From Phaeosaccion multiseriatum (Eukaryota; Protista; Ochrophyta, other classes): DNA of 64,000 bases. Each line of letters opens with the position of its first letter. Position 1 is the first letter of the stretch. The DNA lies in NCBI GenBank assembly GCA_965112735.1, contig OZ218950.1, positions 7,006,001-7,070,000 of the forward strand, read 5' to 3'. Position numbers and translations under genes: made by a program. This document shows, piece by piece, positions 49,214 to 64,000 of the stretch. Below the pieces are notes generated by a model. That model was not told the DNA's origin and ran no database searches. It saw only the letters and a program-made list of their open reading frames with translations.

Positions 49214-52200
49214 TGCTGCTGGTACAGGTGCTGCTGTTGCTGTTGCGGATGCCCCTGAGGGGCGTAGAAAGGCTGCTGCTGCTGCTGCTGGGTGTGCATT
49301 TGCTGTGGGTGCATTTGCTGCTGGTGCAGGTGTATTGGTGGTTGCTGTTGCTGTTGCTGCTGCTGCGGCTGCGGCTGCTGTTGATGCGGCTGTAGCAGCT
49401 GCTGCTGGCGCGAGTGGTGCTGCGGCTGCTGCTGCTGTGGGTCCAGTGAGTTGACGCCCCCCCCTGGAACAAAGGGCGCCGCAAGCATGCCTGCACAGGC
49501 GATTAATGACGTGAGATGAAACGAGGCAGAGCACCAACGGGATTGAGTTGGGTAGGTTGGGTTAGGGGGGGCGCACTTTTTACCAATCATATCCCTCCTT
49601 GGCGTCCCCACCGGAGCCTCGTTTCAAGTCCTCAAGTCAGTCGGGTTGGTGAAAAGACAAAACAGGCAAAAGACGCGCAAAAGATCCGCAAAAGGGGGGC
49701 GGATAAAGCTGGCAAGCGAGAGGACTACAACAACCTACCACCACCCACCTAAGCCTCCGCCTCGGAAGGGCCCGCCTCCTTGTTCCTGCTGCTGCTGAGG
49801 ATGGTGATACGGCTGCTGTTGATGCTGTTGCTGCTGTGGCTGCTGCTGCTGGTGGTGCTGGCCGTTCTGGGGGGCCTTGTAAGGGCCCACGTCTTCCGAC
49901 CCTCCTCCTGCTCCTCCCATGAGCCCTTCGCTCGTGCCTACCGTTTGGTGCGGCGCGAAGTGCTGGGAGTTTCCTCCGTAGAGCGTTGCGACGGGCGCCG
50001 CACCTCCCCCCAAGTAGCTGCCGTTCCCGTTCCCGTTGCTGGTTCCGTTACCGGCCCCGTTGCCGTTGCTGCTGCTGCTGCTGCTGCTGCTGCCGCCCCT
50101 TGTACCATTCATCCCCACCCCACTTGGCGCTCCAGCCCCCCCGGCGTCTCCAGTCACCCCCGCTGAGGCGACTGCTCCTCCTCTCGATCCGCCCACGCCA
50201 GCTGACTCGGACCCTCCAGCTGCTGCGAAGGGAATAGATAGGGCGCCCCCAAACAGGTTCCCCGCGCCACCCCAGGACGGGAGAGCCGAGGTCGAGGGAT
50301 GCCCATTCGCGCCAACAGAGGCCCCGCTGCCTGTGCTCTCCCTGCTGCCCCGTGCCTCAACGCCCCCTCCTTCGGCTTCGGCTGCCGCTAGTGCTGCCGC
50401 TGCCGCCGCTGCGACACCTCCTTCTCCACCCCCCGCTGATGATGATGATGATGCCCCTTCTACTACCGCTGCTGCTGCCGCCGCTGCCGCCGCTGCTCCC
50501 AGAGAGTTGGCGGAGGAAACGCTCTTTAGCTCCGCCACAAAGCTCTCGTCCAGAGTGAGAGAGTCCAAAGCCAGTCCGAACCCCTCTGCTCCTCTCCCGT
50601 CCCCCTGCTCGGTCCCCGCTGCTCCACCCTCTCCTCCTCCCACGGTAGACACCAGGGAGGGAAGGAAGGGCGAAGCTGTACTAGAGAAGTACGGAGAGTA
50701 GAAGCCAAAGTTGCTCCCCTCTCCCCCCCCTCCCAGCGACAGGCCATCCGACGCGGGCAGCTCAACGCGGACGTTGTCATCTGCGGCACTCGATGGGTTG
50801 CACAATGGGGAAGAAGAGCTCAGAGAGTCTGCTCGGCCTGGCGCGAGGGTCGGAGACAGCTCAAGACCAACGGTGCTTGGGAAGACACTGCCGCTGCCGC
50901 TGCCTCTCCTGCTCCTCTGCCCCTCTCCACCCTCCTCCCACCCTCCATTTGCGACCACTGCGGTCCCTCCCAAGGCTGCTAGGGACGCAGAGGAGGAGGA
51001 GGACGAGGCGGCCAAAGTGCCGGTCGCCTCCACGGCCTCAGTGGCTGGCAAGGCACTGTCATTTCGCTTCGGACCAGCGCTAGAGCTGTCCACGGAGCTC
51101 TCCTTGGCGACGTCCGAAGCACTACCGGATGATGGTGCATCGCGCTGCTGGGTTGCCGACTGTTCCTGCTGCTGCTGCTGCTGCTGTTGCTGCTGGGTAG
51201 GTGCGTCACCGCCCTCCTTCTCAGTGGGGCTGGCAGGGGTTTCTGCAGGAGAAGTATCAGGACCGTCTGCCCCAACAGGGCTCACCCCCCCTGGGCTTAT
51301 GCCCGAGCGCAAAGCCGCTGCATATGATGCTGTAGACCTCACTGCTGAGGCCTTTTGACAGGGAGAGAAAGAGAGCCAGAGAGTGTGTGAGAGAGGGGAA
51401 AGAGAGTTAAGAGCAAGAGTGAGCGAGAGTGAGCGAGATGGTGAGAAAGGGGGGTCGAGGCGGACGAACGAAGCCTTCACAATAGACAGCGAAGTGATGC
51501 CCCGTTGGTTGGTGGGTTGGTTGGTTGGAGGGAGCTTCCCTCCCTGCCCTTCCCTTCACTCTGTTCCTCCCTCGCCCCCTTTCCCACGCAAGTGACCGCC
51601 ACAGCCCCAGCTCTCGAGCTCTAGGTTGATTCCCTCCAAGCCTATATGTTTCGCTCTCGAGTTGTACACAGACTCGTCATCGAACGCGCCTCACCTTGAC
51701 TCTCCCTCCGCCGGCGTTGTTGCTGATCGGCAGCGGCTGTCCCCTTCCGGCCTTACCTACTGCACCCGCCCGACCCGTCGCGCGCCCTACCACTCCTCCC
51801 AAGCCTGCCCCTACTCCCCCTCTCGCCCCCCCTGTACCCGCGATGGGTCGCTTATTTGAGGCCCCTACACTATTCGCGGCGGCCTTCTGCTTCTGCTGCT
51901 GCTGCTGCCGTAACGCCAACTGCTGCTGTTGCTGCTGCCGTATCGCCAACTGCTGCTGTTGCTGCTGTTGCTGCTGCTGCTGCGCCCCCACACCCAGCCC
52001 TCCGCTCCCCGCTCCTCCTCCTCCGGATCCGGAAAGGCCACGCTCCAGACTCTGGCTGCCTCCGCCTGAGCTGCTACCAACCGAGAGGGCGCTGCCGACG
52101 CTGCCACTCCTCGGCACCGCCCGTTTCACCTCCACCACCTTGCCGTGGATGGTGTGGTGCGACTGCTGAAGGACGGCCTGCGTGCTCTCGAACTGCTCGT

Positions 52201-54017
52201 ACACGAGGAAGCCGAAGCCTCTCGACTTACGGGTCTCTCGATTGAACATAACCTCCGCCGTCAGCACCTGTGTGTGTATCGTGGAGGAGAGATACACAGC
52301 CAAAGAACAGAAGGAGGGAGAGGGGAGATGGGAGAGGGCTCAGGGTTATGCATGTTGGGGGTGCGCTTTGCTGCGTTGAATGAAAGCATGCATGGCGGCT
52401 TCCGAGAAGAGAAAGAACGAAAAACCTGCCTGCGACGCCGGTGGAAGGAAGGGAACGGTACAAGGGCGGAGCAGCGGCACCTCACCACCCCTCCTCGCTC
52501 CTCACTCACTCACTCACCTTGCCGAACTGCTCAAAATAGCCCCTAAAGGCGTTGTCTCGGGTTTCGTAATGAAGCCCCCCTACGAAGATCTTGTTACCCT
52601 GAGGGTAATCCGAGATGCCTCCGATCACCGCCCCTCCGTGACTGTGGCCGTACGCGCTCCCGTGCGTGCTACCGCCGCTGTCCATTCCTCCAGAACTCGT
52701 CGAACGGCTTCGCCCCTTCTCATTCGACTGAGAAGAGCAAGACGGGGCGTCTGGAGACCCTGGTGGCTGCGATTCAGGTCCTTCTCCTCCTCCTCCTCCT
52801 CCTCCTCCTCCTCCTGTTGCTGCTGTTGTTATTGTTGCTGTTGCTGCTGCTGCTGCCGCTGCTGCGTCTCCCTTTGGTGCTCCGTTTGGCACTCCGTTTG
52901 GTGCTCCTTTTGGTGCTTGTGTCGCTGGTCTTGACTGGGCTGCTGGTGTATTACCAACTGCTGCCGCCGCCGACGGGACGCCATTTGCGCCGCTTTTGCT
53001 GCCATCACCACTGCTTCTACTTCTCCCTCCGCTGTTGTTACTAACCGTTGGGGGACCTGCTGCTCTCGTTGCACCTGCTGTATCACCACCTGCCGCTGCT
53101 CCTGCTGCTGCTGTAGAAGGGGGCCCGCTATTGTTACTTTGTCCAATAGCACTTCTACTGCTGCTGCTGTTACTGCCAGCGCTCGCCCTATTTGAAGCCG
53201 CCACGCGACCTGTCCCGCCATTGCTGCTGATGCTGTGAGGCTGAGCTGCGACATACCCACTGCTGCTCTTGCCCACGACCCCGTTAGAAGGGCCCTGACT
53301 GGCGCTACTGCTGGCTCCATTCTGCTGGAGGCTATTGTTATTTTGACTATGATGGTTTGGGTGCCCCGCCGGCACTCTGCCGCCTCCTACCCCGTTCGCT
53401 GCTGCCGGATGTTGTTGTTGTTTGTGTGGTTGTTGTTCTGATTGTTGTTGCTGTTGTTGTTGTTGTTGTTGTTGTTGTTGCTGTTGCTGTTGCTGCTGCT
53501 GCTGCTGTTGTTGTTGGTGGTGATGATGGTGGTGGTGATGGTGCTGCTCCCTACTCGCCGCCGCTGCCCTCGCCCTCAGGACCGCTTGCTTGGACAGCTC
53601 CGCTAACTGCTCGGAGTCACTCCGTGGCACTGAAGGCTTGGCCTCCACGCGCCTCCCATCAATGATGTGCTCACCGTGTGACAGCGCCTTCTGCGCGCCT
53701 GCCGCCTCAGTGAAGGTGATAAACCCGAAGCCTCTGCTGCGCCGTGTGTTGCCATCTTTCATCACCACGGCATCCACCACACTTCCAAAGGCGCTGAAAA
53801 AGCGACGCAGTGTGTCGTCCGTCGTCTCAAAGGACAAGCCTCCTAGGAAGATCTTTGATCTCGCTGAGAGAGGAGAGAAGGGGGGGGGGGGGGCGGGTGA
53901 CGGACGGAACTTTACAGGACGGTATTGAGAAGTCTGTGAAGAAGTTTTAGCATTGGCGTGCTCATGCCCCCCCCCCCTCCCCTCCGGACACACACACACT
54001 CCCCGAGAGCTTTCCAT
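48922..54017 (-). CDS. Two-RRM RNA-binding protein of the Musashi/DAZAP1/hnRNP A-B type with large Q/G/S-rich regions, ~1414 aa; exons 54017-52518, 52267-51695, 51351-49749, 49490-48922
   Basis: RRM1 KIFLGGLSFETT..RRSRGFGFITF..IDGRRVEAK; RRM2 KIFVGGLHYET..RKSRGFGFLVY..IHGKVVEVKRAVPR. Junction phases are consistent; the 5' end is tentative. Confidence 0.85.
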
Positions 54018-55395
54018 TGGCGGGAGCTCTTCTCCACATACTTTACATCTGTCCTACGACGTGACACGGAAGGTCTTTCTCATTCCGATTTATGTCCCGC
54101 ACAACACGCGTCCCGTCCAGGCCTGCTCACTCACCCTGCAGCTTGCCGCTGGCGTGGCTCTCTCTATGTCCCTTACGATTCGCCATTTTCCACGCCTACT
54201 TGGGTAGGCCTATTGGCGCGCTGCAGACCCTCCTCCCCCAAGCTTGGGTAGGTGGCACACGCCTTGGGGGATCTCGTCAAGACAAATCTCTTACTTCTCG
54301 AAGGTCCTCCAAACAGGTCGAGTGGGCTGGCCTGAGGCTCTCAAACCCACCCTCGAGAGCCCTTCCTTTGGGCCCTCTGAGCACCTCTCTCTCCTTGCCC
54401 CGCCCCCCGGCGCTACTTATTATAAAAAGAGACCTGGCCGAATTACACATCGCAAGCACAATTAGTACAAGCATGCAGCAAGACCACGTACGACTGTAGG
54501 GCGGGATTTCAAGCCAGCATCACTACAGCACCCCACTCCCTGCGTCTTAGCTGCCTATTATAAGCTCTGACCCTCTCCCACCCCGCCGCGGTTTTGCTTT
54601 CCGTGCCCCGACGCCAAGGCATCGAAAAAAATGCCACGGGACTGCAGCACACCGCTGAAGAGCACATGCCTCCATCGACTCCTTTCCGACCCACATCCCC
54701 TCTTTCCCCACGCTCCCCGCGTCCATCTCTTTCATCACTACTCCCCCCTCTCTTACCGTTCCTCGTTTCTTCTTACGTAGAAGATTCGGAGGCTGATTGA
54801 GAAGGGAAGCCTCCTCAAGATAATGAAGGCCCTCAGTTACTCCCTAATAGACAGAACGCTTGGTACAATAGCGAAACTGGGCCCTGGCCCTCGCAGATGA
54901 AGCTCTTAGAGGAAGAAGGATTAAAAAAAAAAGAGATGACGTCCCGCCTTGGGGAAATAGATGGCACTGGATGTCCTTAAATTTTCTTTCTTCCCCTTTC
55001 CCGATAGTCCTTTCCCTTTCCCTCCCTTTCCCTTTCCCCTCTTCCTTGTTTCTACAGTTGTATTTCAAAGAAAACGAACATTGATATTGCAAGCCGAGAT
55101 ATGCCGGCGGAGCCGTGTCGACGAGGCTGGGCCTTCGTGGCGTCTTGCGGCGTGGATTTGCAGGCGTTGGGTTGGGTCCACTGCTCCTGTGACGAGGGAT
55201 GTTAATACTTTTTGCGTCCCTCGGTCCCCTCGGTGGCAGGTGTGGCACCCTGCCGTTGGGCGTGGTCTCTGTCTGCCTGTGTGGGCTGCTTGCCCTTGCC
55301 CATGAGGTAGACCATCTTCCGCTCGTTGAACTCGAGGCCCAGGCGTGGGAATTGGGCTTGGAGGTGGTCATGTCGTGGGGCGTAGGCCGCTAGGG

Positions 55396-55476
55396 GTGTG
55401 TCGGGCTCCATCTGGTCCATCTGGGTTCTCCGCCTATACGCGGACGACCTCATGGACCAGATGGAGCCCTACACAT
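55396..55476. other. 81-nt inverted repeat/hairpin (pre-miRNA-like or TE-derived)
   Basis: GGGCTCCATCTGGTCCAT (55403-55420) is the exact reverse complement of 55452-55469; pairing extends outward and inward (TCCGC/GCGGA around a 6-nt loop). Confidence 0.7.
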
Positions 55477-55489
55477 ACACAATGATACG

Positions 55490-55625
55490 ACCACCAAACA
55501 GTATTCGCACCAAGGCGGACTCTGCATTGGCCACGGAGCTGTGGTAGTGGCCAAGAGATGTACTGTTGAGGGATGTAACAAGTGTGTTAGAGCGTATGGC
55601 CTCGGTATTGGCGCTCTTGAGGTGA
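55490..55625 (+). pseudogene. Fragment of a WRKY19-like C-x4-C..C-x2-H zinc-finger repeat
   Basis: Translates QGGLCIGHGAVVVAKRCTVEGCNKCVRAYGL; the second CxxH is lost; no full gene context. Confidence 0.5.
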
Positions 55626-55789
55626 GTGGTAACTATGGAAAGACGCGTGTGGGGTGGATGGCAATGGAAGGTGATACGGAGTAGGAGAGGAGAGGAGGTC
55701 GATAGTGGGAGAAGGAGAAGGAAAGGATAAAGGGGGGTGGGAAGGGAGTGAAGTGGACCGTAGAGTATGGATAAGCTAGACTAGTGTGG

Positions 55790-56570
55790 ATGGTGTGGTG
55801 GGCGGATGGTTGACTAGCTGTTGCTACTATGTTGTGCGCTGGTGTCATTTGTGTCTTCTGTCGTGCCTACTCCCACTCCTGGAGGCCCTCAGGCCAACGG
55901 TCCGTCGATGCTCCCATGAGGCCCCAGTCGAGGGTTTCCGCTGCCTCATCCGGCGTCATGGTGGCAGCAGCACCGATCATCGCACCACTCCATAGTTGGT
56001 GCGATGAAGGGGGGTCTGCGTCTGATGTGCAGTGCAGATACAGCATGCGGTGCTGGGGGGGCGGTAGGTTCCGCCTCATTTGCTGTGGCCTTCGCTGGGT
56101 GGACGAGTGTGTTGATGTCGAGGTCCAGGATCATCTGGATGCGTTGTTGACGGCTGTAGGCTCCGTCTTTGGAGAAGATGATTGCGGGTAGTAGATGCTG
56201 GAATACGTCCCATGCTAGAAAGGTGTTGAGGGCGGCCTCCGTGGGACAGATTGCGCCTGGCTGCTCCCTGTCCCTTCCAGTAGTTTGTTCTCCGGTACGT
56301 CAGGAGCACGTCGTTTCCTGCCTCGGGGTGCTCTTGCAGTTGAGCTCTGGCGTGCTCCCTGGCCTCTGCTCGGCTGCTGTGATCTCCTCTAGGCTCTCTT
56401 CGATGTGCACTTGCTGGATGCGTTGGAAGGTCTCGTGTGTAGGGGGGAGGTGGCCGTCTCTACCCTTGGTGCTGAGCCTCGCCGCTGCCTTATGCAGGCT
56501 TCCCGGTTTCGTGAGCAGGTGGGCGCAAGTTTCTCTCTTTCGCTTCTCCGTCTGTGCCGCTGCTGTGGGA
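55790..56570 (-). mobile_element. Heavily degenerate non-LTR retrotransposon relic (CRE/RLE-type)
   Basis: Minus-strand LLTKPGSLHKAAARLSTKG..PPTHETFQRIQQVH resembles the segment before the RT of CRE-clade elements; ILDLDINTLVHP resembles an RLE core. Frameshifts and stops are present and no RT core is visible. Confidence 0.4.
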
Positions 56571-57763
56571 GAAGGAGGAGATGGCCTAATGTATGCCTGT
56601 GCCGAAGAAGCGAGGAGCTACGACTGACATCAATAGGAGAACAAGAAAGAGGGCCAAAGTCCCCCCTTCAAATTGAGGGGGAGGAGAGACAGGGGGAAAG
56701 GATGGAAGCAAGGGAGGAGGATGAGAATGGTGTAGGTTTGCTTACGGGGCTGGGGCTCCACGTCAGGGATGAGATTCAGCTGCCCTGTGGTCTATGGAGA
56801 GAGCTGGACAGACGCCGCTGGTGATACTGCTACGGCCTTCAAAGGCCGTCGGGACAGGGAGCTATCAAATGGCGTGGTGGTAGCTGTGGGCCGAGTATGG
56901 TGTTGCTTGCTGCCCCACTGCGCTGTGCGCACAAAGCGGAAGGGGGCGCTGCGAGCGTGCGTACGAGTGGAGGACCCAGGCTCGGCTGGTGTGGGTATCT
57001 CGGGCCTTGAGGTTTAGTGACCCGATACACGCAGGAGCATGTAGATCAAGTGTGAAGGAGAGGCAGCATGAGATGCGAATCACGCGTGGCCAGCTCTAAC
57101 CGGCTCAATTCGTGTGTACGTACCAGCCTTGATCGCTCTCCGCCGGTGTATTTGACGTGAGACGTCCCCTCAGCAACAGGAAACCATCGCACATACACAG
57201 CTCACAGAAGGCGCCAGCAGAAGGGGTGAGGATTTTGTGAGTGGACCTCTCTGACTCAATGAGCTCGCGTCGACCAAACCGCTGGAGGAACATGAGCGAT
57301 TGGTTGGGCGATGCATGAATGGTGTACACGGCACGACTGGCCCTCAGCGAGGCAAGTGGCTGGGTATGTTGGACTTCGGCTCGGTGCGGAGAGGCAGGAA
57401 GGTGCAAGTAGGGGGGAGTTAGGGACCACACTAGACCTAACGCCTGTGCAGCAACTCCAGCATAGCACAGCGAACCGGCGACGAGCGGTGGGCACCAGCA
57501 GAGATGCCAAGAGACGAAGAGCGGCACAGTGCCACTGCGCTCTCATTGTTGCGCAACTGCCTCAACACCGAGCAGCGAGGGCTTCAGAGGTCGCTTGGCC
57601 ATGCGCTAAACCAACAACCAACATACCCTCTTTTCCAATGGTTTTAATTTTGATTAAAAAAAAAGTAATCGCGACAATCTCTCTTTCTATGTACAAAGGT
57701 ATGTTCAGAAGGTTGAAGGTAGAAAAACTCGGGCCTCGAAGGTTGCTGAAAACTCTAACTCAG

Positions 57764-60700
57764 TCACCCCGAGCCTGTCGACCTCCGATGCATCAGCGTC
57801 CCTCCCCGGGGGGACAACGCACTGCTGCGCCTGTGTTGCGTGCCAGAAGGGCTCTGCGGTCTACCAGTCACACCACCCCCTCCCCCTCCTCGACCTCCTC
57901 CTCCTCCTCCTCCTCCTCCCCCAAGAGGCTTGACCAGATCGGGCTCCACCATTCGCTCCTTCTCGCCATCGTCATAGTCGATGTCGCAGGTGCCATCTCT
58001 GTGAATGCGAGCAATACGGCCCTTGTAGAAGCGTCCCTTGCCTCGGTAGTTGCATTCAACCTTCATGCCCTCCTCCAGCTGGCCTCCTCCTCCTCCTCCT
58101 CCCCCGAGAGGCTTGACCAGATCGGGCTCCACCATTCGCTCCTTCTCGCCATCGTCATAGTCGATGTCACAGGTGCCATCTCTGTGAATGCGAGCAATGC
58201 GGCCCTTGTAGAAGCGACCCTTGCCTCGGTAGTTGCACTCGACCTTCATGCCCTCCTCCAGCTTGCCTCCTCCTCCTCCTCCTCCTCCGCCCCCGAGGGG
58301 CTTGACCAGATCGGGCTCCACCATTCGCTCCTTCTCGCCATCGTCATAGTCGATGTCGCAAGTGCCGTTTCTGTGAATGCGAGCAATGCGGCCCTTGTAG
58401 AAGCGACCCTTGCCTCGGTAGTTGCACTCGACCTTCATGCCCTCCTCCAGCTTGCCTCCTCCTCCTCCTCCGCCGCCGCCGAGAGGCCTGACCAGATCGG
58501 GCTCCACCATTCGCTCCTTCTCGCCATCGTCATAGTCGATGTCGCAGGTGCCATCTCTGTGAATGCGAGCAATGCGGCCCTTGTAGAAGCGTCCCTTGCC
58601 TCGGTAGTTGCACTCGACCTTCATGCCCTCCTCCAGCTTTCCTCCTCCTCCTCCTCCTCCTCCGCCCCCGAGAGGCTTGACCAGATCGGGCTCCACCATT
58701 CGCTCCTTCTCGCCATCGTCATAGTCGATGTCGCAAGTGCCGTTTCTGTGAATGCGAGCAATACGGCCCTTGTAGAAGCGTCCCTTGCCTCGGTAGTTGC
58801 ACTCGACCTTCATGCCCTCCTCCAGCTTGCCTCCTCCTCCTCCTCCTCCTCCTCCTCCTCCACCCCCGAGAGGCTTGACCAGATCGGGCTCCACCATTCG
58901 CTCCTTCTCGCCATCGTCATAGTCGATGTCGCAAGTGCCATCTCTGTGAATGCGAGCAATACGGCCCTTGTAGAAGCGTCCCTTGCCTCGGTAGTTGCAT
59001 TCAACCTTCATGCCCTCCTCCAGCCTTCCTCCTCCTCCTCCTCCTCCTCCTCCTCCTCCTCCTCCTCCTCCCCCGAGAGGCTTGACCAGATCGGGCTCCA
59101 CCATTCGCTCCTTCTCGCCATCGTCATAGTCGATGTCGCAGGTGCCATCTCTGTGAATGCGAGCAATGCGGCCCTTGTAGAAGCGTCCCTTGCCTCGGTA
59201 GTTGCACTCGACCTTCATGCCCTCCTCCAGCTGGCCTCCTCCTCCTCCTCCTCCTCCTCCTCCACCACCACCACCCCCGAGAGGCTTGACCAGATCGGGC
59301 TCCACCATTCGCTCCTTCTCGCCATCGTCATAGTCGATGTCACAGGTGCCATCTCTGTGAATGCGAGCAATACGGCCCTTGTAGAAGCGTCCCTTGCCTC
59401 GGTAGTTGCATTCAACCTTCATGCCCTCCTCCAGCTTGCCTCCGCCTCCGCCGCCTCGTCCTCCTCCCCCGAGAGGCTTGACCAGATCGGGCTCCACCAT
59501 TCGCTCCTTCTCGCCATCGTCATAGTCGATGTCACAGGTGCCATCTCTGTGAATGCGAGCAATGCGGCCCTTGTAGAAGCGTCCCTTGCCTCGGTAGTTG
59601 CACTCGACCTTCATGCCCTCCTCCAGCTTTCCTCCTCCTCCTCCTCCTCCTCCTCCCCCGAGAGGCTTGACCAGATCGGGCTCCACCATTCGCTCCTTCT
59701 CGCCATCGTCATAGTCGATGTCGCAGGTGCCATCTCTGTGAATGCGAGCAATACGGCCCTTGTAGAAGCGTCCCTTCCCTCGGTAGTTGCACTCGACCTT
59801 CATGCCCTCCTCCAGCTTTCCTCCTCCTCCTCCTCCTCCTCCTCCTCCTCCCCCGAGAGGCTTGACCAGATCGGGCTCCACCATTCGCTCCTTCTCGCCA
59901 TCGTCATAGTCGATGTCGCAAGTGCCGTTTCTGTGAATGCGAGCAATACGGCCCTTGTAGAAGCGTCCCTTGCCTCGGTAGTTGCACTCGACCTTCATGC
60001 CCTCCTCCAGCTTGCCTCCTCCTCCTCCTCCTCCTCCGCCCCCGAGGGGCTTGACCAGATCGGGCTCCACCATTCGCTCCTTCTCGCCATCGTCATAGTC
60101 GATGTCGCAAGTGCCGTTTCTGTGAATGCGAGCAATACGGCCCTTGTAGAAGCGTCCCTTGCCTCGGTAGTTGCACTCGACCTTCATGCCCTCCTCCAGC
60201 TTTCCTCCTCCTCCTCCTCCTCCTCCGCCGCCGAGAGGCTTGACCAGATCGGGCTCCACCATTCGCTCCTTCTCGCCATCGTCATAGTCGATGTCGCAAG
60301 TGCCATCTCTGTGAATGCGAGCAATGCGGCCCTTGTAGAAGCGTCCCTTGCCTCGGTAGTTGCACTCGACCTTCATGCCCTCCTCCAGCTGGCCTCCTCC
60401 TCGTCCTCCTCCTCCTCCTCCTCCTCCACCCCCGAGAGGCTTGACCAGATCGGGCTCCACCATTCGCTCCTTCTCGCCATCGTCATAGTCTATGTCGCAG
60501 GTGCCATCTCTGTGAATGCGAGCAATACGGCCCTTGTAGAATCGTCCCTTGCCTCGGTAGTTGCATTCAACCTTCATGCCCTCCTCCAGCTGGCCTCCTC
60601 CTCCGCCGCCTCGTCCTCCTCCCCCGAGAGGCTTGACCAGATCGGGCTCCACCATTCGCTCCTTCTCGCCATCGTCATAGTCGATGTCGCAAGTGCCGTT

Positions 60701-63700
60701 TCTGTGAATGCGAGCAATACGGCCCTTGTAGAAGCGTCCCTTGCCTCGGTAGTTGCACTCGACCTTCATGCCCTCCTCCAGCTTGCCTCCTCGTCCTCCT
60801 CCTCCTCCGCCCCCGAGGGGCTTGACCAGATCGGGCTCCACCATTCGCTCCTTCTCGCCATCGTCAAAGTCGATGTCGCAAGTGCCATCTCTGTGAATGC
60901 GAGCAATACGGCCCTTGTAGAAGCGTCCCTTGCCTCGGTAGTTGCACTCGACCTTCATGCCCTCCTCCAGCTGGCCTCCTCCTCGTCCTCCTCCTCCTCC
61001 TCCTCCTCCTCCTCCACCACCACCACCCCCGAGAGGCTTGACCAGATCGGGCTCCACCATTCGCTCCTTCTCGCCATCGTCATAGTCGATGTCACAGGTG
61101 CCATCTCTGTGAATGCGAGCAATACGGCCCTTGTAGAATCGTCCCTTGCCTCGGTAGTTGCATTCAACCTTCATGCCCTCCTCCAGCTGGCCTCCTCCTC
61201 CGCCGCCTCGTCCTCCACCCCCGAGGGTCTTGACCAGATCGGGCTCCACCATTCGCTCCTTCTCGCCATCGTCATAGTCGATGTCGCAAGTGCCATCTCT
61301 GTGAATGCGAGCAATACGGCCCTTGTAGAAGCGACCCTTGCCTCGGTAGTTGCACTCGACCTTCATGCCCTCCTCCAGCTGGCCTCCTCCTCCTCCTCCT
61401 CCTCCGCCGCCGAGAGGCTTGACCAGATCGGGCTCCACCATTCGCTCCTTCTCGCCATCGTCATAGTCGATGTCGCAAGTGCCGTTTCTGTGAATGCGAG
61501 CAATACGGCCCTTGTAGAATCGTCCCTTGCCTCGGTAGTTGCACTCGACCTTCATGCCCTCCTCCAGCTTGCCTCCGCCTCCGCCGCCTCGTCCTCCTCC
61601 CCCGAGAGGCTTGACCAGATCGGGCTCCACCATTCGCTCCTTCTCGCCATCATCATAGTCGATGTCGCAAGTGCCATCTCTGTGAATGCGAGCAATACGG
61701 CCCTTGTAGAAGCGTCCCTTGCCTCGGTAGTTGCACTCGACCTTCATGCCCTCCTCCAGCTTGCCTCCTCCTCGTCCTCCTCCTCCTCCTCCTCCTCCTC
61801 CTCCTCCACCACCACCACCCCCGAGAGGCTTGACCAGATCGGGCTCCACCATTCGCTCCTTCTCGCCATCGTCATAGTCGATGTCACAGGTGCCATCTCT
61901 GTGAATGCGAGCAATACGGCCCTTGTAGAAGCGTCCCTTGCCTCGGTAGTTGCATTCAACCTTCATGCCCTCCTCCAGCTTGCCTCCGCCTCCGCCGCCT
62001 CGTCCTCCTCCCCCGAGAGGCTTGACCAGATCGGGCTCCACCATTCGCTCCTTCTCGCCATCGTCATAGTCGATGTCACAGGTGCCATCTCTGTGAATGC
62101 GAGCAATACGGCCCTTGTAGAAGCGTCCCTTGCCTCGGTAGTTGCACTCGACCTTCATGCCCTCCTCCAGCTTGCCTCCTCCTCGTCCTCCTCCGCCTCC
62201 TCCTCCTCCTCCCCCGAGAGGCTTGACCAGATCGGGCTCCACCATTCGCTCCTTCTCGCCATCGTCATAGTCGATGTCGCAGGTGCCATCTCTGTGAATG
62301 CGAGCAATGCGGCCCTTGTAGAAGCGTCCCTTGCCTCGGTAGTTGCATTCAACCTTCATGCCCTCCTCCAGCTTGCCTCCGCCTCCGCCGCCTCCTCCTC
62401 CTCCCCCGAGAGGCTTGACCAGATCGGGCTCCACCATTCGCTCCTTCTCGCCATCGTCATAGTCGATGTCGCAGGTGCCATCTCTGTGAATGCGAGCAAT
62501 ACGGCCCTTGTAGAAGCGTCCCTTGCCTCGGTAGTTGCACTCGACCTTCATGCCCTCCTCCAGCCTTCCTCCTCCTCCTCCTCCTCCTCCTCCTCCTCCT
62601 CCTCCACCCCCGAGAGGCTTGACCAGATCGGGCTCCACCATTCGCTCCTTCTCGCCATCGTCATAGTCGATGTCGCAAGTGCCATCTCTGTGAATGCGAG
62701 CAATACGGCCCTTGTAGAAGCGACCCTTGCCTCGGTAGTTGCACTCGACCTTCATGCCCTCCTCCAGCTGGCCTCCTCCTCCTCCTCCTCCTCCGCCGCC
62801 GAGAGGCTTGACCAGATCGGGCTCCACCATTCGCTCCTTCTCGCCATCGTCATAGTCGATGTCGCAAGTGCCGTTTCTGTGAATGCGAGCAATACGGCCC
62901 TTGTAGAATCGTCCCTTGCCTCGGTAGTTGCATTCAACCTTCATGCCCTCCTCCAGCTTGCCTCCGCCTCCGCCGCCTCGTCCTCCTCCCCCGAGAGGCT
63001 TGACCAGATCGGGCTCCACCATTCGCTCCTTCTCGCCATCGTCATAGTCGATGTCGCAGGTGCCATCTCTGTGAATGCGAGCAATGCGGCCCTTGTAGAA
63101 GCGTCCCTTCCCTCGGTAGTTGCACTCGACCTTCATGCCCTCCTCCAGCTTGCCTCCTCCTCGTCCTCCTCCGCCTCCTCCTCCTCCTCCCCCGAGAGGC
63201 TTGACCAGATCGGGCTCCACCATTCGCTCCTTCTCGCCATCGTCATAGTCGATGTCGCAGGTGCCATCTCTGTGAATGCGAGCAATGCGGCCCTTGTAGA
63301 AGCGTCCCTTGCCTCGGTAGTTGCACTCGACCTTCATGCCCTCCTCCAGCTTTCCTCCTCCTCCTCCTCCTCCTCCGCCGCCGAGGGGCTTGACCAGATC
63401 GGGCTCCACCATTCGCTCCTTCTCGCCATCGTCATAGTCGATGTCGCAAGTGCCGTTTCTGTGAATGCGAGCAATACGGCCCTTGTAGAAGCGTCCCTTG
63501 CCTCGGTAGTTGCACTCGACCTTCATGCCCTCCTCCAGCTTTCCTCCTCCTCCTCCTCCTCCTCCGCCGCCGAGAGGCTTGACCAGATCGGGCTCCACCA
63601 TTCGCTCCTTCTCGCCATCGTCATAGTCGATGTCACAGGTGCCATCTCTGTGAATGCGAGCAATGCGGCCCTTGTAGAAGCGACCCTTGCCTCGGTAGTT

Positions 63701-64000
63701 GCACTCGACCTTCATGCCCTCCTCCAGCTTTCCTCCTCCTCCTCCTCCTCCTCCGCCCCCGAGAGGCTTGACCAGATCGGGCTCCACCATTCGCTCCTTC
63801 TCGCCATCGTCATAGTCGATGTCGCAAGTGCCATCTCTGTGAATGCGAGCAATACGGCCCTTGTAGAATCGTCCCTTGCCTCGGTAGTTGCATTCAACCT
63901 TCATGCCCTCCTCCAGCTTGCCTCCGCCTCCGCCGCCTCCTCCTCCTCCCCCGAGAGGCTTGACCAGATCGGGCTCCACCATTCGCTCCTTCTCGCCATC
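57764..64000 (-). CDS. C-terminal part of a giant tandem Tudor-like-domain protein: 31 complete 53-aa domains plus a partial one, poly-Gly/RGG linkers; 5' end outside the window
   Basis: Open frame of more than 6.2 kb; unit KLEEGMKVECNYRGKGRFYKGRIARIHRDGTCDIDYDDGEKERMVEPDLVKPL fits the Tudor pattern (G.KV....Y.G.I......DIDYDDG.E); most differences between copies are synonymous. Confidence 0.88.
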   Translation of the reverse strand, partial: DGEKERMVEPDLVKPLGGGGGGGGGGGKLEEGMKVECNYRGKGRFYKGRIARIHRDGTCDIDYDDGEKERMVEPDLVKPLGGGGGGGGGGKLEEGMKVECNYRGKGRFYKGRIARIHRDGTCDIDYDDGEKERMVEPDLVKPLGGGGGGGGGGKLEEGMKVECNYRGKGRFYKGRIARIHRNGTCDIDYDDGEKERMVEPDLVKPLGGGGGGGGGGKLEEGMKVECNYRGKGRFYKGRIARIHRDGTCDIDYDDGEKERMVEPDLVKPLGGGGGGGGGGRGGGKLEEGMKVECNYRGKGRFYKGRIARIHRDGTCDIDYDDGEKERMVEPDLVKPLGGGGRGGGGGGKLEEGMKVECNYRGKGRFYKGRIARIHRNGTCDIDYDDGEKERMVEPDLVKPLGGGGGGGGGGQLEEGMKVECNYRGKGRFYKGRIARIHRDGTCDIDYDDGEKERMVEPDLVKPLGGGGGGGGGGGGGGGRLEEGMKVECNYRGKGRFYKGRIARIHRDGTCDIDYDDGEKERMVEPDLVKPLGGGGGGGGGGGKLEEGMKVECNYRGKGRFYKGRIARIHRDGTCDIDYDDGEKERMVEPDLVKPLGGGGGGGGGGRGGGKLEEGMKVECNYRGKGRFYKGRIARIHRDGTCDIDYDDGEKERMVEPDLVKPLGGGGRGGGGGGKLEEGMKVECNYRGKGRFYKGRIARIHRDGTCDIDYDDGEKERMVEPDLVKPLGGGGGGGGGGGGGGGGRGGGKLEEGMKVECNYRGKGRFYKGRIARIHRDGTCDIDYDDGEKERMVEPDLVKPLGGGGRGGGGGGKLEEGMKVECNYRGKGRFYKGRIARIHRNGTCDIDYDDGEKERMVEPDLVKPLGGGGGGGGGGQLEEGMKVECNYRGKGRFYKGRIARIHRDGTCDIDYDDGEKERMVEPDLVKTLGGGGRGGGGGGQLEEGMKVECNYRGKGRFYKGRIARIHRDGTCDIDYDDGEKERMVEPDLVKPLGGGGGGGGGGGGGGGRGGGQLEEGMKVECNYRGKGRFYKGRIARIHRDGTCDIDFDDGEKERMVEPDLVKPLGGGGGGGRGGKLEEGMKVECNYRGKGRFYKGRIARIHRNGTCDIDYDDGEKERMVEPDLVKPLGGGGRGGGGGGQLEEGMKVECNYRGKGRFYKGRIARIHRDGTCDIDYDDGEKERMVEPDLVKPLGGGGGGGGGGRGGGQLEEGMKVECNYRGKGRFYKGRIARIHRDGTCDIDYDDGEKERMVEPDLVKPLGGGGGGGGGGKLEEGMKVECNYRGKGRFYKGRIARIHRNGTCDIDYDDGEKERMVEPDLVKPLGGGGGGGGGGKLEEGMKVECNYRGKGRFYKGRIARIHRNGTCDIDYDDGEKERMVEPDLVKPLGGGGGGGGGGGGKLEEGMKVECNYRGKGRFYKGRIARIHRDGTCDIDYDDGEKERMVEPDLVKPLGGGGGGGGGGKLEEGMKVECNYRGKGRFYKGRIARIHRDGTCDIDYDDGEKERMVEPDLVKPLGGGGRGGGGGGKLEEGMKVECNYRGKGRFYKGRIARIHRDGTCDIDYDDGEKERMVEPDLVKPLGGGGGGGGGGGGGGGQLEEGMKVECNYRGKGRFYKGRIARIHRDGTCDIDYDDGEKERMVEPDLVKPLGGGGGGGGGGGGGGGGRLEEGMKVECNYRGKGRFYKGRIARIHRDGTCDIDYDDGEKERMVEPDLVKPLGGGGGGGGGGGGGKLEEGMKVECNYRGKGRFYKGRIARIHRNGTCDIDYDDGEKERMVEPDLVKPLGGGGGGGGGGKLEEGMKVECNYRGKGRFYKGRIARIHRDGTCDIDYDDGEKERMVEPDLVRPLGGGGGGGGGKLEEGMKVECNYRGKGRFYKGRIARIHRNGTCDIDYDDGEKERMVEPDLVKPLGGGGGGGGGGKLEEGMKVECNYRGKGRFYKGRIARIHRDGTCDIDYDDGEKERMVEPDLVKPLGGGGGGGGQLEEGMKVECNYRGKGRFYKGRIARIHRDGTCDIDYDDGEKERMVEPDLVKPLGGGGGGGGGGRGGGGGGVTGRPQSPSGTQHRRSSALSPRGGTLMHRRSTGSG

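Follow-up and report, generated by a model that had tools for sequence, protein, structure and literature searches.

The final 6.2 kb of a 64,000-nucleotide stretch of the genome of Phaeosaccion multiseriatum (contig OZ218950.1, positions 7,006,001 to 7,070,000; here called the window, with coordinates counted from its first letter) contain a long tandem array of Tudor-type units on the minus strand. The favoured explanation, to which a probability of about 0.6 is assigned, is that this part of the window is the 3′ 6.2 kb of a stramenopile gene with the architecture deaminase-like – SAM – (EF-hand) – poly-Tudor, encoding at least 32 barrels, each of which is predicted to bind a methylated basic side chain. 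The protein would resemble beads on a string, i.e., at least 32 independent, near-identical Tudor barrels held on flexible poly-Gly spacers, with each bead, to judge from its cage residues, binding one methylated basic side chain. By cage type, the ligand would more likely be a lower-state methyl-lysine, methyl-arginine being possible. Such an array could grip clients that carry several marks (ribonucleoprotein (RNP) proteins or chromatin) by avidity. If the gene has the N-terminal domains of its homologues, a SAM domain would add oligomerisation, multiplying the valency, and EF-hands would add calcium control.

The open reading frame (ORF) comprises 2,078 codons and is unbroken from its stop codon (57764-57766) to the window edge at 64000; within the array, no overlapping ORF of 80 amino acids or more is present besides it. 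Over 57894-64000, Tandem Repeats Finder (TRF) reports a 189-nucleotide period with 31.4 copies (score 8865) and a two-unit period of 393 nucleotides (score 9518). The translation can be parsed into 31 full cores of 53 amino acids (57923-63919) plus one partial core at the window edge (63953-64000), the core consensus being KLEEGMKVECNYRGKGRFYKGRIARIHRDGTCDIDYDDGEKERMVEPDLVKPL. The array therefore has at least 32 units, its N-terminus and total copy number falling beyond the window. The 31 cores are 93-100% identical in DNA, where they form 26 haplotypes, and about 98% identical in protein; the first residue is R rather than K or Q in two of them. The 32 linkers range in length from Gly8 to Gly20, and 13 of the 32 carry a single Arg in a GRG context, i.e., an Arg flanked by Gly as in the RGG/RG motifs that are substrates of protein arginine methyltransferases (PRMTs). 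An earlier interpretation, made from the letters of this DNA and referred to here as the sequence-only reading, had counted at least 31 near-identical 53-residue domains in one unbroken exon, separated by linkers of Gly8-19 of which about 13 held one Arg; the single ORF with its 31 full units and one cut unit agrees with that count, the longest linker having one Gly more. The features of the array are as follows.

57764..57766, minus strand: TGA stop codon of the Tudor ORF (ORF call).
57767..57871, minus strand: C-terminal tail of 35 residues, S/R/P-rich, with two RRxS/T motifs (HRRSS and HRRST) (translation).
57872..57922, minus strand: last linker, G10-R-G6, with its Arg codon CGA at 57890-57892 (translation).
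57923..58081, minus strand: unit 31, the example 53-residue core (Pfam, AlphaFold2, Foldseek, VIA-align).
57923..63919, minus strand: 31 full Tudor cores and 30 internal poly-Gly linkers of 8-20 residues (TRF, translation).
59456, 60401, 60611, 60791, 60983, 61208, 61589, 61772, 62000, 62183, 62978 and 63161 (first base of each codon, numbered on the plus strand): the 12 CGA Arg codons of the internal linkers.
63920..63952, minus strand: Gly11 linker joining the cut unit to core 1 (translation).
63953..64000, minus strand: final 16 residues of another unit, truncated at the window edge, past which the ORF runs on (translation).

Both RRxS/T motifs of the tail (57767-57871) are of the basophilic-kinase type, and RRxS-like C-terminal tails also occur in oomycete homologues (...RRRSGNSSD and ...RRRSGNMSD) and in Ectocarpus homologues (...SRRGGSYQ).

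The pattern of variation among the cores is that of a coding gene. About 11 common sites, each with two states, are combined in mosaic fashion in the core haplotypes, the hallmark of unequal exchange or gene conversion. There are 19 variable core sites, 13 of them synonymous and six non-synonymous, for 33.7 synonymous and 125.3 non-synonymous sites per core, giving an omega-like ratio of 0.12 (binomial P=1.3e-5). This excess of synonymous variation means that the protein sequence of the unit is under purifying selection. On this evidence, the array belongs to a coding gene under selection, and the selection signal would be difficult to explain in an assembly artefact or a dead repeat.

Four read runs (X1, X2, X4 and X5) were mapped as contigs to 52251-58250. 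Runs X1, X2 and X4 are genomic DNA of one sample, with contigs that continue through introns; the assembly was probably made from this sample. The contigs of these three runs end at 57864, at the start of the first linker. Despite its label 'DNA?', run X5 derives from RNA, for it includes a contig in which 53864-54134, a segment bounded by GT..AG on the minus strand, is spliced out. The notion that the tail of the Tudor protein is intronic, and spliced to the X5 transcript that ends at 57674, was ruled out, as the contig has no extra letters at 57674 and there is no fitting AG acceptor.

The unit is recognised as a Tudor domain both by profile and by model. A single unit scores 27.9 bits on Pfam Tudor_5, just under the cut-off, and three units together exceed the gathering cut-offs of four Tudor-clan entries: Tudor_5 (70.4 bits, cut-off 31), 53-BP1_Tudor (38.4, cut-off 22), JMJD2A Tudor_2 (33, cut-off 31.4) and Agenet (32.9, cut-off 27). 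Unit 31, with three flanking Gly on each side (57914-58090, minus strand), was modelled with AlphaFold2 on an alignment of the unit with 140 diverse homologous units. The model has a mean predicted local distance difference test (pLDDT) score of 85.9 and five strands (10-14, 21-29, 35-39, 44-48 and 53-55), i.e., the predicted five-stranded SH3-like barrel of the Tudor/Royal family. Foldseek aligned it at template-modelling (TM) scores of 0.75-0.82 to the Tudor domains of PHF19, PHF1, PHF20, TDRD3, 53BP1, LBR and SMN, and VIA-align gave Z scores of 8.3-10.2 (PHF1 10.2, TDRD3 9.4, PHF20 9.1, SMN 8.7, with SPF30 also matched), the best extending across 57 of 59 residues. The Tudor fold, which the sequence-only reading had proposed with SMN, LBR and 53BP1 as its points of reference, is in this way confirmed by the model. 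The fold was dropped as a means of discriminating between types of ligand, as methyl-lysine and methyl-arginine readers (PHF1, PHF19, TDRD3, LBR, PHF20 and SMN) all lie within about 1.5 Z of one another.

It is the pocket that points to a type of ligand. Residue conservation was tabulated over 1,237 distinct units of 101 homologues. Aromatic residues occupy position 12 in 92% of units, position 18 in 93%, position 19 in 89% and position 36 in 99% (Tyr in 94%); among the acidic pocket positions, D38 is conserved in 93%, E or D at position 40 in 92% and E42 in 95%; and the glycines G5 and G39 are conserved in 97-98% (G39 98%). The predicted pocket of each unit consists of Y12, Y19 and Y36 together with D38, E40 and E42, and the Y12/Y19/Y36/D38 pattern is kept in all 31 units of the window, with Y36F in one. 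The residues that the sequence-only reading had picked as cage candidates (Y of NYRG, F/Y of RFYK and Y/D of DYDD) are thus the most conserved positions of the family, and they align with the cage of 53BP1. A phmmer alignment places residues 5-44 of the unit on residues 8-47 of 53BP1 chain 2g3r_A, 40 residues to 40, ungapped by length. The 53BP1 cage consists of W1495, Y1502, F1519, D1521 and Y1523 (PMC5974088), and its spacing (7/17/+2/+2) is shared by Y12, Y19, Y36, D38 and E40 of the unit. The unit therefore has the arrangement of a methyl-lysine cage of the 53BP1/SGF29/PHF20 kind, in which one aromatic closes strand 1, a second opens strand 2 and a third closes strand 3, with an Asp at +2. 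The 53BP1 mutant Y1523A still makes damage foci, and its authors state that it may recognise histone H4 dimethylated at lysine 20 (H4K20me2) normally (PMC5974088); by analogy, the Glu found at this position in the window units need not abolish methyl-lysine reading.

The cage of SMN is composed differently: W102, Y109, Y127 and Y130, with N132 contributing a hydrogen bond (PMC9481570). In the VIA-align ranges (4qq6; model 3-57 to SMN 90-145), SMN Y130 and N132 correspond to G39 and K41 of the unit, and neither Asn nor an aromatic residue occurs at positions 37-42 across the units of the family; the unit has three cage aromatics (Y12, Y19 and Y36) in place of the four aromatics plus Asn of SMN. 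No match to Pfam TUDOR (PF00567) or SMN (PF06003) is obtained with the unit, even at E up to 10. Among 141 diverse family units, matches were to Tudor_5 in 101, Agenet in 95, PTM/DIR17 in 79, Crb2 in 54, 53BP1 in 26, PF00567 TUDOR in four and PF06003 SMN in none. A profile search of solved structures returned PHF20 Tudor 2, SGF29, PHF20L1, ARID4A and 53BP1 at the top, with TDRKH, Drosophila Tudor and LBR lower (E 0.016-0.2). By its sequence, the pocket looks like that of mono-/dimethyl-lysine readers rather than that of an SMN-type methyl-arginine reader. A unit lacking a barrel or a cage, which the sequence-only reading had listed as a finding that would count against it, is not what was obtained: the barrel is modelled and the aromatic/acidic pocket is conserved. 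The SMN-type methyl-arginine reading that it favoured finds no support, with Gly and Lys where SMN has Y130 and N132 and no PF00567 or PF06003 match.

A word-index search with the 2,078-residue translation found 101 homologues (best E = 0 at 2,008 bits), with 45-53% identity over 51-96% of the query. All homologues that carry an organism name are from stramenopiles, including oomycetes (Phytophthora, Pythium, Aphanomyces, Saprolegnia and Globisporangium), ochrophytes (the pelagophyte Aureococcus; the brown algae Ectocarpus, Laminaria, Sphacelaria and Scytosiphon; the xanthophytes Tribonema and Heterococcus; and a chrysophyte) and the labyrinthulid Hondaea. Similar repeats in stramenopile proteins had already been mentioned in the sequence-only reading. 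Arrays of 20-33 units are common among the homologues, e.g., 33 units in P. cinnamomi and in Pythium oligandrum, 31 in P. infestans and in a JGI protein, and 30 in Aureococcus. Several homologues, among them proteins of P. cinnamomi, Aureococcus and Hondaea, are annotated in their source as 'cytidine deaminase', and the N-termini, where present, match cytidine deaminase weakly and contain SAM and EF-hand domains. Thus, P0005, P0026 and P0028 have a weak deaminase-like region plus SAM, with an EF-hand in P0026 and P0028 and none in P0005. In P0014, P0020, P0028, P0005 and P0026, a long RS/RG/RD-rich low-complexity tract resembling those of SR-type proteins lies between EF-hand and array. Enrichment of GW/WG Argonaute hooks was sought in the pre-array regions of the homologues, and none was found.

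This family was described by Iyer, Zhang, Rogozin and Aravind in 2011 (NAR 39:9473; PMC3239186) as a stramenopile-restricted branch of CDD/CDA deaminases in which the deaminase is followed by SAM and 1-22 Tudor domains. The same authors reported an inactive deaminase with 23 Tudors in Ectocarpus, regarded large arrays of related Tudors as a stramenopile hallmark, and proposed that the arrays read dimethyl-arginine and assemble RNP in a branch of RNA interference (PMC3239186). The claim of the sequence-only reading that no function had been assigned to such repeats is consequently not supported, as this methyl-arginine/RNP hypothesis was already in print. A search of the literature for experimental work with any family member found none, and the 2011 computational description was the only account that it turned up. 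With its tandem array of the family's own Tudor type, the window gene is, on sequence grounds, a further member of the stramenopile family known from sequence since 2011; the traits that distinguish it are its pure poly-Gly linkers and the extreme homogeneity of its units.

That homogeneity is a property of the array. Units are 98% identical in protein within the array, and the best unit elsewhere, i.e., in other species, is 75% identical; unequal crossing-over or gene conversion maintains the uniformity of the window array. In P. cinnamomi (P0001), 30 units are 100% identical and have identical 16-residue linkers; units of the P. infestans homologue are 95% identical to one another, and those of other members 45% to 85%. 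As judged from these sequences, homogenisation or renewed expansion of arrays has taken place independently in different lineages, a pattern suggesting that the number of copies is itself important.

The linkers have a history of their own. Gly is encoded by GGA in 71% of cases in the 30 internal linkers and by GGC in 5/6 of cases in the cores; thus, the linkers behave as a (GGA)n microsatellite, with length drifting by slippage. The codon of the linker Arg is CGA in 13 of 13 cases, and it occurs in few contexts: GGA-CGA-GGC-GGC in seven, GGA-CGA-GGA-GGA-GGC or a shortened form of it in five, and the last linker in one. These Arg recur in two-unit blocks, fitting the 393-nucleotide period. The 13 Arg can therefore be traced to some three mutations that were carried along when units were copied, and the absence of AGA (the transition product of GGA) among the linker Arg codons also argues for few events. 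A one-base change of GGA gives Arg in 2/5 of the non-stop outcomes, so that three Arg events have a probability of about 6% by chance, which is no evidence for selection on the linker Arg. Arg is lacking from 19 of the 32 linkers, including all six between units 24 and 30. In the mRNA, the linkers (57872-63952) would form 32 (GGA)8-20 tracts, and the DNA holds the matching purine/pyrimidine mirror repeats; tracts of the (GGA)n type are known to adopt G-quadruplex-like or triplex structures and are prone to slippage in replication, in line with the linker lengths of 8 to 20.

Linker composition varies widely across the family (R 0-21%, K 0-28%, G 1-92%). The window protein has the highest Gly content (92%, the next being 42%) and, at 4%, one of the lowest Arg contents. 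Brown-algal, pelagophyte and Hondaea linkers are rich in G/R/S/D, and 50-89% of them contain RG; in several homologues, RG pairs modestly exceed the expectation from composition (z 2-3, once 6.7). Oomycete linkers are of the K/S/D/E kind (SSPKKK...SEDD), and some members have nearly no basic linker residues. The cage residues are unchanged across the R-rich, K-rich and base-poor groups. When P0001 and P0017 (Phytophthora) were compared with P0013 and P0011 (Aureococcus) and with P0014 and P0020 (Ectocarpus), Arg in ochrophytes was seen to be swapped for Lys in oomycetes both in the linkers and in the strand 1-2 loop (position 13), the cage remaining fixed. Because position 13 of the loop swaps too, the exchange looks like a lineage-wide amino-acid preference, not co-evolution with a ligand pocket.

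Several points weigh against the explanation offered here. Run X5 is dense on 55040-57674 and has no contig on 57675-58081, i.e., on the tail and the last unit, with the caveat that contigs cannot prove absence. The copy number of the Tudor array rests on the assembly, because the short-read contigs break at 57864. The modelled fold fits methyl-lysine and methyl-arginine readers equally well, the ligand is predicted from the cage residues only, and the mapping of individual residues to 53BP1 assumes the usual numbering of the 2g3r_A construct (three vector residues), the spacing argument being independent of numbering. Finally, the N-terminal domains of the window gene lie outside the window and are taken, by analogy, from homologues. 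The silence of X5 on the tail and last unit, together with the short-read contigs that stop at the first linker and cannot confirm copy number, is also what would be expected of an assembly artefact or of a decaying, untranscribed repeat. Such an origin is barely credible for a 6.2-kb open frame with 26 core haplotypes, varied linker lengths and a synonymous excess of this size, given also that many stramenopiles sequenced independently have homologous arrays of 20-33 units, some known from assembled transcriptomes. The sequence-only reading had itself allowed that an artefactual array would undo it, and the 13 synonymous versus six non-synonymous sites (P=1.3e-5) counter that objection.

The other rivals accept the array and dispute what it binds. 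It may read dimethyl-arginine on RGG-tailed Argonaute/Sm-like proteins and assemble RNP, with relatives that have an active deaminase editing small RNAs. Drosophila Tudor and the TDRD proteins are animal multi-Tudor scaffolds that work by this logic, and the RS/RG-rich pre-array region of brown-algal, pelagophyte and labyrinthulid homologues is like that of RNA-processing proteins. This model, proposed by Iyer et al. (PMC3239186), is a published alternative that nevertheless seems unlikely, since the pocket is without the fourth aromatic and the Asn of SMN, since the Pfam and solved-structure profile matches favour the chromatin-reader side of the clan, and since the homologues lack Argonaute-hook enrichment. 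A closer tie between units and linkers was central to the sequence-only reading, in which SMN-type methyl-arginine units would bind the RGG linkers of their own protein, and methylation of Arg would switch self-association, condensates or filaments. The 13 linkers with the standard PRMT substrate motif, the frequent and in several cases modestly enriched RG of many ochrophyte and labyrinthulid homologues and the structural matches to TDRD3, SMN and SPF30 all speak for it; it is made quite improbable by the Gly (98%) and Lys that replace the SMN aromatic and Asn, by the lack of PF00567 and PF06003 matches, by the few events behind the 13 CGA codons (three independent events, all giving Arg, being expected in about 6% of cases by chance), by the 19 Arg-free linkers with their run of six, and by the occurrence of the same cage beside K/S/D/E linkers in oomycetes and beside nearly base-free ones. 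A wider version is speculative and judged very unlikely: stramenopile arrays would recognise methylated basic residues (Arg in ochrophytes, Lys in oomycetes) of linkers and pre-array tails, be it within one protein or between proteins of this kind, methylation would gate a SAM-nucleated, calcium-sensitive condensate, and the window protein would be a stripped-down version. The barrels could also not be readers of methyl marks at all, acting as nucleic-acid-binding or structural elastic beads in which the acidic and aromatic residues serve folding or bead-bead electrostatics. The strand 1-2 loop and strand 2 are strongly basic and conserved (positions 13, 17, 22, 25 and 51 are mostly R/K), DNA-binding Tudor/PWWP relatives are among the structural matches (Shuguo PWWP with single-stranded DNA), and the Rad9 Tudor binds DNA (PMC2034471). 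That the cage positions are the most conserved (89-99% over the 1,237 units and three linker classes) is the pattern predicted by a ligand pocket, and this leaves the non-reader explanation with little probability. Thus, of the sequence-only reading as a whole, the Tudor barrel, the cage residues and the multivalent scaffold stand, the last being a reasonable reading of at least 32 barrels with conserved pockets; SMN-type methyl-arginine reading, the linker as the protein's own ligand and the absence of an assigned function are not supported.

Next to the Tudor gene, 55040-57674 is a 2.6-kb stretch with high X5 depth, no ORF longer than 152 amino acids and a positive GC skew unlike that of its neighbours. 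The X5-covered stretch ends 90 nucleotides from the stop of the Tudor gene, just past a run of nine A. It could be a non-coding transcript, the untranslated region (UTR) of a convergent gene, or a long 5′ leader of the neighbouring RRM gene. The latter (49735-54910, minus strand) encodes a polyglutamine-rich protein with two RRM domains, of the heterogeneous nuclear ribonucleoprotein (hnRNP)/Musashi kind, and has an intron between about 52304 and 52505 plus 5′ UTR introns, one of which (53864-54134, GT..AG, minus strand) is confirmed by the spliced X5 contig. The statement in the sequence-only reading that the surrounding genes bear introns is in keeping with the neighbouring introns seen in spliced RNA contigs.

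Stramenopiles, including brown algae, pelagophytes and oomycete plant pathogens, hold many giant Tudor arrays that are unstudied at the bench, and the window gene is among the cleanest examples, with at least 32 near-identical barrels, intact predicted pockets and pure Gly spacers. Because the units are near-identical, one recombinant unit would represent the whole array well in a search for its ligand, and the ligand of the pocket would tell whether it is chromatin or RNP granules that these arrays organise in a major lineage of eukaryotes. The window gene adds to a family on record since 2011; it is not the founding example of a new kind of system.

Its closest counterparts are the other members of the stramenopile deaminase-SAM-Tudor family (PMC3239186; the 23-Tudor protein of Ectocarpus, and those of P. 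cinnamomi, Aureococcus and Hondaea). They have homologous units (45-53% identity over the array, with per-unit identity to the window units up to 75%), and the array is likewise C-terminal and in the range of 20-33 units. The window protein differs in its linkers, which are 92% Gly where the next member has 42%, and in the 98% mutual identity of its units; its count of at least 32 exceeds the 1-22/23 of the 2011 description, but not the database maximum of 33.

Among proteins of known structure, the methyl-lysine readers 53BP1/Crb2, SGF29 (Tudor 2) and PHF20 (Tudor 2) share the barrel and provide the best profile matches in the PDB. The spacing of W1495, Y1502, F1519 and D1521 in the 53BP1 cage equals that of the window unit, and an aromatic-x-Asp-Gly motif is shared as well, being YDDG in the window, FYDG in PHF20 and FDDG in 53BP1. 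The differences are that the position of 53BP1 Y1523 is Glu in the window units, that the position of PHF1 F71 is an invariant Glu (E42), and that the window units are single barrels on flexible linkers, with no packed tandem pair. The methyl-arginine readers SMN, SPF30, TDRD3, Drosophila Tudor and TDRD1/6 share the predicted fold (Z 8.3-9.4); compared with SMN, SPF30, TDRD3 and the extended Tudors, the window unit is without the fourth aromatic, the Asn, the staphylococcal-nuclease-like (SN-like) extension and a Pfam TUDOR or SMN match. With the multi-Tudor scaffolds of germ granules, i.e., Drosophila Tudor and TDRD1/6, the window protein shares the multivalent logic of many Tudors in one chain; Drosophila Tudor has 11 Tudor domains, about a third as many as the window protein.

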